Of a stretch of DNA of 64,000 nucleotides, positions 34,151-62,600 are shown one piece after another (within the stretch, counting starts at the first letter, position 1; each line of letters starts with the position of its first letter). The notes beneath the pieces are model-generated. The model was given only the letters and a program-made list of their open reading frames with translations. It searched no databases and had not been told where the DNA came from. The stretch covers positions 1-64,000 of the forward strand of contig NIVC01003561.1 of NCBI GenBank assembly GCA_002269645.1. Direction: 5' to 3'. This stretch comes from Macrostomum lignano. Taxonomy: Eukaryota. The position numbers and the translations under genes are program-made.

Positions 34151-58020
<23,870 letters not shown>

Positions 58021-59439: not shown

Positions 59440-59915
59440 TATTAATGATCATCCTGTCACTCATATGGCCGTTCAGTCACTCTAATGATTATTTAGTCAC
59501 TCCTATGACCATTCAGACACTCTTATGACCATTCGCATCCGGTCACACTTATGACCATTCAGTCACTCTTATGACTATTCAGTCACTCTTATGACTATTA
59601 AGTCACTCTTATGACTATTCAGTCACTCTTATGACTATTCAGTCACTCTTATGACTATTCAGTCACTCTTATGACTATTCAGTCACTCTTATGACTATTC
59701 AGTCAATCTTATGACTATTCTGTCTCTATAATGACTATACATTCACTTTTATGACCATTCACTCGCTCTTATGATTATTCGGTCATTATTATGACCATTC
59801 AGTCACTCTCATGACCATTCACTCGCTCTTACGAGTATGACCATTCAGTCACTCTCATGACAATTCAGTCACTCTTATGACTATTAAGTGCTCTTATGAC
59901 CATTCAGTCACCCCA
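59440..59915. repeat. 20-bp minisatellite (TATGACCATTCAGTCACTCT)n starting at the 3' end of the RRM gene
   Basis: Direct units, degenerate at the left. Confidence 0.9.
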
Positions 59916-59923
59916 CCAATCGC

Positions 59924-61243
59924 TCAGTCATTCTTATCGCTATCATCATCGTCCTCATCTTCGTCAGTGGCTTCATCGTCTTCCATCTCGCCGCGGCGCC
60001 GACTGCCGCCAGCGGGCTCAGGCTCAGTCTCCGAGGCCGCGGCTGAGGACAGTTCAGCGCCGGCGGCAGCACCAACAGGGCCGTCGCCGCCGCTGCCTTC
60101 AACCGTGGCCGCCGCGATTTCGCCGCTGGTGTTGGCACTGCCGCCGACAGATGAGGCAGCGGCGGCGGAGGCCGCGGTCTCGCCGCCGCCAATGCCGGCA
60201 GCGAAGACACAGTTGGTGTACACGCCAATCTCATGCTCAGCCTGGCAGTGGCGCAGCAGCTCCCAGCTGCTGAGAAACTGCTTGCCGCACTTGGCGCAGT
60301 CCAGCATCCTGGGTTCACCCTTCAGCTTGCACAGGCAGACAAACCGGCGTCGGCAGCCGTCCTGCTTGTGCGAACTGAGCCGGTCCAGGTTGTCGAAAAC
60401 GTCCTTGCAGTTGCCGCAGACCAAGTAGTCCCGGCCGCCGCTGATTCTATCGCGCGAGGCGCCAACTTGAGACAGCTTGCCGGAGTCGAAACCGCCGCTG
60501 TCGTCCTGACTGCCGAGCCGTCGGGGTCCCAGACGCTCCTTCACACTGAGGCCGCTGCTACCGCCACCGCCGCCGCCGCTGACAACGCTCGACGCCGACG
60601 AGCCGCTGCCGCCGCCGTGTCGGTCTCGCCGATTCTTGGGCTCAGACGCGATGTTCACGTCGATGGTCTGGCCGGCGTAGACGCGGCCGTCCTCGCGTTT
60701 GCAAGCGGACCGAGCTGCCGGCTCTTCGACAAACTGCACGAAAGCGAAGCCGTTATGGACGTTGACTTCCGTCAGGCTGCCGTATTTGCTGAATATTCGC
60801 TCCAGATCGGCTCGGCCCAGCTCGTTCGTGTTCAGATTGCCAATGAACACGCGACCCTTGGGATTCTGGCCGCTTCCACCTCCGCCGCCGCCGCCGCCGC
60901 CTCCGTGATGCTGGCGATGATTCTGGGGTCCATGCTGATGATGCAGCATTTGCGGAGGCTGCTGCTGTTGCTGCATCATGAACTGCATATCCATAGGGCC
61001 TGGGCCTTGCATTTGCATCTGGGGCGGCGGAGGCGGCGGCATCACGCCAGGCATGGGCGGCCCCGGCTGCGGGTAGGCCATAAACGGCTGCTGCTGCTGC
61101 TGCGGCGGCTGCTGGCCATAAGCCATCATTGGCATCTGGCCCGGATGCGTCATAGGCTGCTGCTGCACCATTGGCATGCTCTGCTGCATACTGCTAACTG
61201 GGGCCATTGGCATCATGCCAGGCATGTGCGGATTGACCTGCAT
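59924..61243 (-). CDS. Intronless 439-aa protein: Q/P/M-rich N-terminus, hnRNP C/RALY-type RRM, BCL11-like CCHC and C2H2 zinc fingers, acidic tail
   Basis: RRM at 60856-60635 (RVFIGNLNT...IFSKYG...VHNGFAFVQF...EDGRVYAGQTIDVNIASEPK). CCHC at 60430-60353 (DYLVCGNCKDVF...HKQDGC). C2H2 at 60316-60218 (EPRMLDCAKCGKQFLSSWELLRHCQAEH). Single open ATG-TGA frame with GC3-rich codons. Confidence 0.9.
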   Translation of the reverse strand: MQVNPHMPGMMPMAPVSSMQQSMPMVQQQPMTHPGQMPMMAYGQQPPQQQQQPFMAYPQPGPPMPGVMPPPPPPQMQMQGPGPMDMQFMMQQQQQPPQMLHHQHGPQNHRQHHGGGGGGGGGGSGQNPKGRVFIGNLNTNELGRADLERIFSKYGSLTEVNVHNGFAFVQFVEEPAARSACKREDGRVYAGQTIDVNIASEPKNRRDRHGGGSGSSASSVVSGGGGGGSSGLSVKERLGPRRLGSQDDSGGFDSGKLSQVGASRDRISGGRDYLVCGNCKDVFDNLDRLSSHKQDGCRRRFVCLCKLKGEPRMLDCAKCGKQFLSSWELLRHCQAEHEIGVYTNCVFAAGIGGGETAASAAAASSVGGSANTSGEIAAATVEGSGGDGPVGAAAGAELSSAAASETEPEPAGGSRRRGEMEDDEATDEDEDDDDSDKND

Positions 61244-61399: not shown

Positions 61400-61553
61400 G
61401 CGCAACCTAGGGATTCACCCGGCCGTTTCTATTGACAACACACACATTTAAGTCGCTATTGGACGGAATAGTAGTCACGTGACTGCTCTCAGCCAATAGC
61501 GACTTACGTGTGTGTTGCCAATAGAAACGGCCGAGTGATTCCCAAGGTTGCGC
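61400..61553. mobile_element. 154-bp near-perfect palindrome (MITE-like)
   Basis: Left arm GCGCAACCTAGGGATTCAC-CGGCCGTTTCTATTG-AACACACAC-TAAGTCGCTATTGG is mirrored on the right; centre AGTCACGTGACT. The 15-mer CCAATAGAAACGGCC also occurs at about 14080. Confidence 0.8.
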
Positions 61554-61600: not shown

Positions 61601-62600
61601 CCTCTATTTGACTGCAGTTTAGACACTTACACTTATATAACCATTCCCGACAGATAGGTCCAAAATAGTTTCCGAAGCTACGATCATGAATGCTGCTGCT
61701 ACCACCACCCTCCGTATAGTCTCACTTAAATTTAGTGTCTGTTTGCTAATGCTAATATACTTTATTTCTACTGATTGCTTTATACGAGCATCTTACTTCT
61801 GACAGCGACGACTAGTTATGGATCTAAACATCGGACTCTGAAAACAATTTGCTCACTGACAACGAGGATGGATCATTTATATTGTTATAAAAGGCCCAGT
61901 GAGTAGGATGGTGACAACGTCGAAAGCGCAAGCAGCTCAGATGAGGACATCGAAAAGGAGGAAGAGCACGTGTGGCACCAAGCTATCAAAGGGATGGACA
62001 CGACAAGCCACGGCTGCCCGAGAGTTCATGGGCTGGTACCACCACAAATCAGCGAATGGCAGTGAGTCAGCCTTTTTGCACCTAACCGACGAGCTATTTG
62101 AAAACATTGCCAGTTGGACGACCGAATGGGCTTGGAGTTTTGCTAAGGAAAGGTCAGTTGATGAGGTACCAAAGTTTGTGTCTACATGGAAGGATTACAG
62201 TGTTGACGAGATGAAAAAGCTGATTGGCATTGATGACTAGCCAGAGATCAGCTTGTACTGGGCAAAGGATCCTGTGTACCACTGCACATTTTTTGCTCAA
62301 CCGCATTCAATTTTGTGTAACTGTTTTAAAGCAGATTCTCTCCTGCTTCTACAGCAGCACTGGTCCACTCCTCAAAGCCATGTGGACAAAATCACTCCAT
62401 TCCTTGCTCTTGTGCAGCATGCCTGTTGGAACAATTACATACCAGATCAGTAACTATCAATTGACAAGACTCTGGTCATGTACAAAGGATGGGTACTGTT
62501 TAGACAGTACATTCCCTCCAAGAAAAGCAAGTTGAGTATCAAGCTGTACCAAGCTATACAGTCCACAGCACCTTGATCTTGTACAACTACCATGGCAGCA
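61601..62600 (+). mobile_element. Decayed piggyBac-family DNA transposon; possible left end TTAA|CCTCT at 61601, right end not identified
   Basis: Transposase remnants lie downstream; the TTAA target site preference fits piggyBac. Confidence 0.6.
62030..62560 (+). pseudogene. piggyBac (PGBD/DDE_Tnp_1_7-type) transposase pseudogene
   Basis: LTDELFENIASWT, WKDYSVDEMKKLIG, YWAKDPVY, and KITPFL...YIPDQ*LSIDKTLVMYKGWVLFRQYIPSKKSKLSIKL, which matches the family pattern LSIDESM..FKGR...KQYIP.KP.KYGIK. In-frame stops and frameshifts are present. Confidence 0.85.

Follow-up and report, generated by a model that had tools for sequence, protein, structure and literature searches.

Is a gene that joins an hnRNP C-type RNA recognition motif (RRM) to a pair of BCL11-type zinc fingers the product of a recent fusion, or a protein form of long standing? 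The question is raised by a stretch of 64,000 nucleotides from the flatworm Macrostomum lignano (assembly GCA_002269645.1, contig NIVC01003561.1, positions 1 to 64,000; 'the window' below means this whole stretch), the minus strand of which encodes such a protein, hereafter the window protein, at 59924..61243. A preliminary description made from the sequence alone had taken it for a chimera. We find that it is a divergent paralog within an existing family; very probably its gene is one of two or more M. lignano paralogs that belong to an hnRNP C-like family spread across Bilateria. On profile comparison, the finger pair is specifically homologous to the first two fingers of BCL11 proteins, ZF0 and ZF1.

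The protein and its family

The domain map of the window protein was drawn from a list of open reading frames (ORFs), Pfam, PDB sequence searches, regular expressions and BLASTP; all coordinates given for it lie on the minus strand. The interval 59924..61243 is exactly one uninterrupted ORF of 439 amino acids (aa) with an ATG start, and the sequence reads an in-frame TAA two codons 5' of that ATG. The NCBI annotation of the assembly makes the identical call, with 1320 bp for 439 aa and therefore no intron, giving a complete single-exon coding sequence (CDS) of 439 codons plus stop (TGA, 59924-59926). The protein starts MQVNPHMPGMM and opens with a low-complexity region (aa 1-125, 60869..61243) in which Q, P, M and G make up 77% of residues. 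This 125-aa extension is the longest seen in the family; P/M/G-rich extensions before the RRM also occur in the mollusc members P0132, P0147, P0149 and P0196. The RRM follows (aa 129-210, 60614..60859), with RNP2 RVFIGNL, RNP1 NGFAFVQF and a C-terminal ASEPK, and is succeeded by a G/S-rich linker (aa 211-270, 60434..60613). Finger 1, of CCHC type, occupies aa 272-297 (60353..60430; D272, C276, G277, C279, H292, C297), and finger 2, of C2H2 type, occupies aa 310-342 with its flanks (60218..60316; EP lead-in, C316, C319, W327, H332, H337, VY tail); the corresponding regular expressions matched as C-x2-C-x12-H-x4-C from aa 276 and C-x2-C-x12-H-x4-H from aa 316. Between the fingers the family alignment marks a CxC (C303, C305; 60329..60337) to which no zinc partners are assigned. 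The protein ends in an A/G/S-rich tail of 95 aa (aa 345-439, 59927..60211) with a terminal acidic run: D and E form 24% of the tail (family median 22%) and 15 of the 30 final residues. The preliminary description had read from a single ORF an RRM, two fingers (C-x2-C...H-x4-C, then C2H2) and a tail of acidic residues, and this layout is confirmed by the ORF list, by Pfam and PDB and by these patterns. An xLV[ST]L motif in the linker was considered as a family feature and dropped, since only 18 of 50 members have it; the window protein is without it.

The RRM is, by its sequence matches, of hnRNP C type. Pfam placed RRM_1 (PF00076) at aa 132-194 (E 2.5e-11), and the best PDB matches, over aa 116-214, were human hnRNP C (1wf2, E 2.4e-24; 2mxy, E 1.2e-23) and RALY (1wf1, E 8e-22); the next RRM family in PDB, that of yeast Nab3 (2xnq, E 2e-12), came ~40 bits below hnRNP C. 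By BLASTP the human C protein was 56% identical to the window protein over aa 131-210, with nothing significant outside that interval, where the acidic ends matched by composition only (E 1.1). The closeness to hnRNP C and RALY that the preliminary description gave for this RRM is thus borne out both in PDB (E 2e-24) and by the alignment to the human C protein. Because the PDB alignment shows RNP1 and RNP2 to be kept, the domain would bind single-stranded U-rich RNA as vertebrate hnRNP C does, and the window protein is likely, as a prediction, a nuclear U-tract-binding protein.

When the finger region (aa 263-345) was searched exhaustively with phmmer against 1.84 billion cluster representatives, 370 of these reached E<=1e-3 and 41 reached E<=1e-10; many were matched in one alignment across both fingers, in proteins of 250-650 aa. 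Local HMMER runs found the complete two-finger module in 101 of 150 listed representatives. At least 50 module-bearing representatives had an hnRNP C-type RRM, N-terminal to the module in all 50, with 40-330 aa between the two; the window protein (RRM aa 126-212, module aa 269-344) has the same order. Acidic tails after the module are common in the family, and a P/M/Q-rich N-terminus is an optional part of its layout. The preliminary description had thought the architecture unfamiliar, but at least 50 of ~100 cluster representatives share the RRM, the finger pair and the acidic tail, and the combination is already common in databases, in some cases under the name hnRNP C in RefSeq or UniProt.

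The members come from about ten phyla. Flatworms contribute a second, ~300-aa M. lignano paralog and proteins of Mesocestoides, Schistosoma and Cichlidogyrus; the brachiopod Lingula has XP_013382175.1, named 'heterogeneous nuclear ribonucleoprotein C'. Molluscan members are those of scallops (Mizuhopecten OWF53691.1; a Mizuhopecten entry is named 'Heterogeneous nuclear ribonucleoproteins C1/C2'), Haliotis (XP_067651460.1), Littorina and Sinanodonta. To these are added the annelids Owenia and Ridgeia, the bryozoan Watersipora, two paralogs in the priapulid Priapulus (including XP_014670523.1), the scorpion Centruroides (XP_023221948.1) and further arthropods (a wasp, beetles, Anopheles, a springtail and Artemia), and the cephalochordate Branchiostoma (XP_078579733.1). 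Word-indexed searches were also run: with RRM and fingers together the results were dominated by vertebrate hnRNP C matching through the RRM alone, while with the module profile 149 candidates, mostly short fragments, were scored, which added beetle, mosquito and Artemia members and contained no outgroups.

The module itself is strongly constrained. In an alignment of 38 family modules (A1) 11 columns are invariant: those of the eight zinc ligands, an Asp at the fourth position ahead of the first Cys, the C-G-x-C Gly, and one Trp of the second helix. The window protein keeps all 11, together with the near-invariant L, K, C and L, and matches the signature D-x3-C-G-x-C-x12-H-K-x3-C, CxC, C-x2-C-x7-W-x4-H-x4-H. 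The inter-finger CxC was seen in 72 of the 81 modules that were parsed, and at least 90% of sequences have its second Cys. An AlphaFold2 model of the module alignment, computed as a monomer, contained two beta-beta-alpha fingers (mean predicted local distance difference test 83.5). Foldseek matched this model in PDB to generic DNA-bound C2H2 pairs only, and weakly (best E 0.019, template-modelling score ~0.3).

Domain databases do not recognize the finger pair; Pfam reported only RRM_1 and sub-threshold C2H2 matches in these proteins. As a result dozens of RefSeq models carry the name 'uncharacterized' or plain 'hnRNP C'. Our literature searches on zinc fingers of hnRNP C and RALY, on the BCL11 CCHC finger together with hnRNP C, and on Macrostomum hnRNPs found neither an account of this architecture nor a paper tying the fingers of invertebrate hnRNP C-like proteins to BCL11. 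The family is already present in databases, auto-annotated as hnRNP C or as uncharacterised, and is experimentally undescribed.

Relation of the fingers to BCL11 ZF0 and ZF1

The preliminary description had likened the fingers to the CCHC finger of BCL11A and the C2H2 finger that follows it. PDB searches with the finger region or its profile brought up mainly generic multi-finger proteins, the one specific lead being a BCL11A ZF0 peptide of 27-28 aa, whose entries (9bv0, 9b4p) were matched by the family profile exactly over finger 1. A BCL11A stretch was used purely as bait for real BCL11 sequences; it fetched named BCL11A and BCL11B proteins (up to 100% identity at partial coverage, and 99% over the full query), all of which carry the Pfam domain PF25491, 'CCHC_BCL-11A'. 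Twelve BCL11A/B sequences were aligned (A2), and hhalign of A1 against A2 gave a probability of 98.9% (E 3e-17). The two alignments are collinear: ZF0 is the partner of finger 1 and ZF1 that of finger 2, where the EP lead-in and the IY tail align as well.

To these we added a two-way comparison by hidden Markov models (HMMs), with ~610 fingers from 47 multi-finger proteins of the finger-region phmmer search as a generic control; family and generic sets were separated by the score of the full-module HMM, for which the members had a median of 102.5 bits and the lowest of 83 module sequences 58.4. The HMM of family finger 2 scored BCL11 ZF1 at a median of 51.0 bits and a minimum of 26.6 (all 45 entries containing ZF1), above even the best generic finger (25.6; 95th percentile 12.9). 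That of family finger 1 scored ZF0 at a median of 18.9 bits, with 111 of 120 above the generic maximum of 7.4. In the opposite direction the BCL11 ZF1 HMM gave the family a median of 27.1 bits (90 of 101 above the generic maximum of 16.7; window protein 22.1), and the ZF0 HMM a median of 10.9 bits (82 of 96 above the generic maximum of 7.1).

Searched against the same 1.84 billion proteins, the window module retrieved P0217 (E 9.2e-8), a BCL11-like factor of 470 aa with multiple fingers, which is PF25491-positive at 43.9 bits (BCL11A 53.8; cutoff 27) and which we take to resemble ZNF296. It is 38% identical to the window module along 79 residues covering both fingers. Its ZF0-ZF1 gap is only ~25 residues and is accompanied by an acidic run after the fingers, the same compact arrangement as in the hnRNP C-like family, and P0217 may preserve an ancestral compact form of the module. 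Membership of PF25491 was considered for the window protein as well and was not assigned, finger 1 being undetected by that model.

Between them the hhalign result, the two-way HMM controls and the P0217 alignment bear out the preliminary assignment of the fingers to the BCL11 CCHC finger and its C2H2 neighbour. In the controls some 600 generic C2H2 fingers separate cleanly from the pair, and so far as sequence comparison goes it is specifically homologous to BCL11 ZF0 plus ZF1.

Origin of the gene and role of the fingers

From the intronless CDS and its intron-rich neighbourhood a retroposed or chimeric origin had been suggested. A flatworm-specific chimera or retrogene, in which an hnRNP C RRM and BCL11 fingers were fused recently, would indeed fit a single-exon CDS beside an intron-rich plexin gene, and the Lingula ortholog, whose CDS is split over several exons, indicates intron loss, possibly via retroposition, on the Macrostomum lineage. 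Yet the same order and the same invariant residues recur in 50 or more representatives spread over about ten phyla, amphioxus included, and the fusion is therefore far older than flatworms and predates any retroposition. The second M. lignano paralog is likewise single-exon (909 bp for 302 aa), as is the gene for a 127-aa ribosomal protein beside it, so the intronless state is uninformative on a chimeric origin; nor is any poly(A) remnant visible after the stop codon of the window gene. We regard a recent chimera or retrogene as very improbable; intron loss on the Macrostomum lineage is likely and says nothing on the origin of the domain combination. Even less probable, in our estimate, is an annotation or assembly artefact or an unexpressed pseudogene. 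Two contigs of the assembly do encode the exact window protein, and nearly identical copies might prompt such a suspicion, but the only CDS difference between them is one synonymous base, the ORF is intact over 439 codons with the family-invariant residues all kept in both domains, and the same genome has another paralog that is more conserved. For annotation, then, the locus is an ordinary conserved gene, and what had looked like a chimera is the usual shape of hnRNP C in invertebrates.

Since protostomes and amphioxus have the RRM-finger layout and vertebrate hnRNP C has an RRM with a zipper, the finger module was, on this sequence distribution, probably ancestral for Bilateria, with the zipper substituted on the vertebrate stem. 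The preliminary description had supposed that a BCL11 module replaced the hnRNP C zipper; with the module common to protostomes and a cephalochordate, the direction of change was probably the reverse.

What the fingers do must be argued by analogy. In BCL11A, ZF0 and ZF1 are atypical fingers, apart from the DNA-binding ZF2-3 and ZF4-6, and are needed for tetramer and dimer formation (PMC12006351, which also cites a crystal structure of the ZF0 tetramer by Zheng et al. 2024); a preprint on solution structures likewise treats ZF0 and ZF1 of BCL11A/B as self-association units (10.1101/2024.12.10.627839). Correspondingly, the finger pair of the window protein probably does not read DNA and would instead mediate zinc-dependent self-association, as BCL11A ZF0 (tetramer) and ZF1 (dimer) do. 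In that case the protein would work on long stretches of pre-mRNA as an oligomer, a role that in vertebrate hnRNP C is the job of the leucine zipper. We put self-association through the fingers at somewhat less than an even chance, given that the residues of the BCL11A tetramer core are not conserved. The best explanation as a whole, a member of a bilaterian hnRNP C-like family with BCL11-related fingers for which self-association is proposed, we consider reasonably likely.

Several points weigh against this explanation or parts of it. The BCL11 ZF0 HMM gives the window protein only 5.1 bits, under the best generic finger, and PF25491 had no match in the window fingers, in P0127 or in P0153 with the cutoff relaxed to E<=10. 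The likeness of finger 1 to the BCL11A CCHC finger holds in its pattern and not in its spacing, since 12 residues, the canonical number, separate the second Cys from the His in the family and 14 in BCL11 ZF0 (PMC12006351). The five hydrophobic helix residues that form the tetramer core of BCL11A ZF0 (ILIFI) are replaced here by a mixed leucine and acidic stretch (NLDRLSS), and the F of AWFLL in BCL11 ZF1 by D or E in family finger 2; the family keeps the hydrophobic helix stretches of both BCL11 fingers only in part. Among the listed module-bearing representatives about half, most of them short, are without an RRM; many of these are probably fragments (P0162 starts inside the RRM), and RRM-less isoforms or paralogs may be among them. 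Finally, the ancestry of the module is argued from protostomes and one deuterostome lineage, amphioxus, with no cnidarian or sponge outgroup identified.

Some of these same points would favour a finger pair that serves as a second nucleic-acid-binding unit, for RNA or, as a bridge between chromatin and RNA, for DNA. Fingers of the C2H2 and CCHC types are frequent binders of nucleic acids, both of those here have canonical beta-beta-alpha geometry, with the 12-residue spacing in finger 1, the tetramer core is not conserved, and the Foldseek matches, weak as they are, were DNA-bound two-finger structures. We nevertheless think this unlikely: the helix positions that usually read bases hold the invariant Trp, hydrophobic and acidic residues, the closest homologs are atypical fingers distinct from the DNA-binding arrays of BCL11 (PMC12006351), and an acidic tail follows the module. 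Improbable, in our view, is a heterotypic docking module for ZF0/ZF1 of BCL11-type proteins or for some other partner, which would couple the RNA-binding protein to transcription regulators. BCL11A and BCL11B do hetero-multimerise through ZF0 (PMC12006351), the two families share three invariant non-ligand residues (D, G and W), and C. elegans BCL-11 is reported to have an N-terminal stretch similar to the C2HC finger (PMC12865584), so that both families may coexist in protostomes; against this, the idea is purely inferential and the interface residues differ between the families.

A broader conjecture, which we consider doubtful, is that BCL11 ZF0-ZF1 and the finger pair in invertebrate hnRNP C-like proteins are a single ancient module, by which the ancestral bilaterian hnRNP C oligomerised before vertebrates switched to the zipper. 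Were it true, vertebrate hnRNP C would have exchanged one oligomerisation device for another. The inter-finger CxC, which is without intramolecular partners, might complete an intermolecular zinc site, and the module might also let an invertebrate hnRNP partner BCL11-type factors, by which nascent RNA would be linked to regulators of chromatin. ZF0 and ZF1 of BCL11A are of medical interest, as tetramerisation is needed for protein stability and for silencing of fetal haemoglobin; homologous modules in RNA-binding proteins, old and evolving independently, offer natural variation by which residues for folding can be separated from those for self-association.

Around the gene itself, a tandem array at 59456-59911 (~22 copies of the 20-bp unit GTCACTCTTATGACTATTCA, 79% matches) begins 13 bp past the stop codon, and so lies in or just after the 3' untranslated region. 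The two genomic copies of the gene differ in the length of this array, which is much shorter at the other copy (NIVC01000412.1), and it is thus length-polymorphic or mis-assembled. About 160-310 bp upstream of the start codon is a nested inverted repeat (61400-61553; 46-nt arms, 91% complementarity, 62-nt spacer, inner 23-nt arms), centred on a CACGTG palindrome with mirrored CCAAT/ATTGG flanks. The repeat is unchanged in the other genomic copy and may be a promoter element of palindromic form or an insertion like a miniature inverted-repeat transposable element. Further upstream, in an AT-rich stretch, a plus-strand ORF at 61899-62240 encodes a basic product of 113 aa starting MSRMVTTSKAQAAQMRTSKRRKS, and may be a transposon-derived fragment or noise.

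The neighbouring plexin gene occupies ~40100-55000 on the minus strand, its 2181-aa NCBI product bearing Plexin_cytopl and Plexin_RBD domains. Its introns are full of long microsatellite-like arrays, which give rise to spurious ORFs with SVSQ, CLSV and TDRQ repeats (among others 40120-41433, 44145-45161, 50112-50741 and 53850-54971). Elsewhere in the genome a Ribosomal_L22 gene (L001, 606-1847) adjoins the other copy of the window gene and a Ribosomal_L29 gene (L003, 2648-3031) adjoins the 302-aa paralog; that both hnRNP C-like paralogs stand beside ribosomal protein genes is probably coincidence.

Comparison with known systems

The nearest relatives of the window protein are the other invertebrate hnRNP C-like proteins, with which it has in common the domain order, the 11 invariant module residues and the acidic tail, and, in the case of molluscs, a P/M/G-rich N-terminus. 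Its closest module match is P0122, a 281-aa protein from a JGI metagenome (57% identity), and module identity to the second M. lignano paralog (PAA58332.1/PAA50351.1) is 46%. Among insects, Drosophila CG42458 has been taken as the fly ortholog of hnRNP C (30% identity), in a report that does not discuss its protein domains (PMC5570092), and genetic data exist for it; beside it, other insects (the wasp, beetles and Anopheles), a springtail and brine shrimp have module-bearing models.

With BCL11 proteins the family shares D-x3-C-G-x-C...H-K-x3-C in the CCHC finger and EP-x3-C-x2-C-x3-F-x-S-x-W-x-L-x2-H-x-Q-x2-H-x3-(I/V)-Y in the second. Beyond the fingers themselves the proteins differ. The two fingers lie ~60-130 residues apart in the aligned BCL11A/B sequences (97 in P0362); the DNA-binding C2H2 arrays of BCL11 (ZF2-3 and ZF4-6) have no counterpart in the window protein, which has one C2H2 pattern to which Pfam adds none. 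The N-terminal MSRRKQ-type motif of the A2 sequences, which serves in NuRD binding, is also absent from it.

The RRM of yeast Nab3 and of S. pombe C3H8.09c is the next-closest subtype, and some family members have been auto-named 'C3H8.09c-like'; we know of no finger module in Nab3. Vertebrate hnRNP C1/C2, RALY and RALYL, like the window protein, have a single N-terminal RRM of the same subtype (RVFIGNLNT, GFAFVQ, AGQ..D.N.A.EPK) and an acidic C-terminus, the latter a match of composition only. They lack its long Q/P/M-rich N-terminal extension. After the RRM, vertebrate hnRNP C continues with a basic region and leucine zipper (bZLM/CLZ), through which it forms tetramers and which the window protein does not have, and the place of which is occupied, in the flatworm protein, by the G/S linker and the two zinc fingers.

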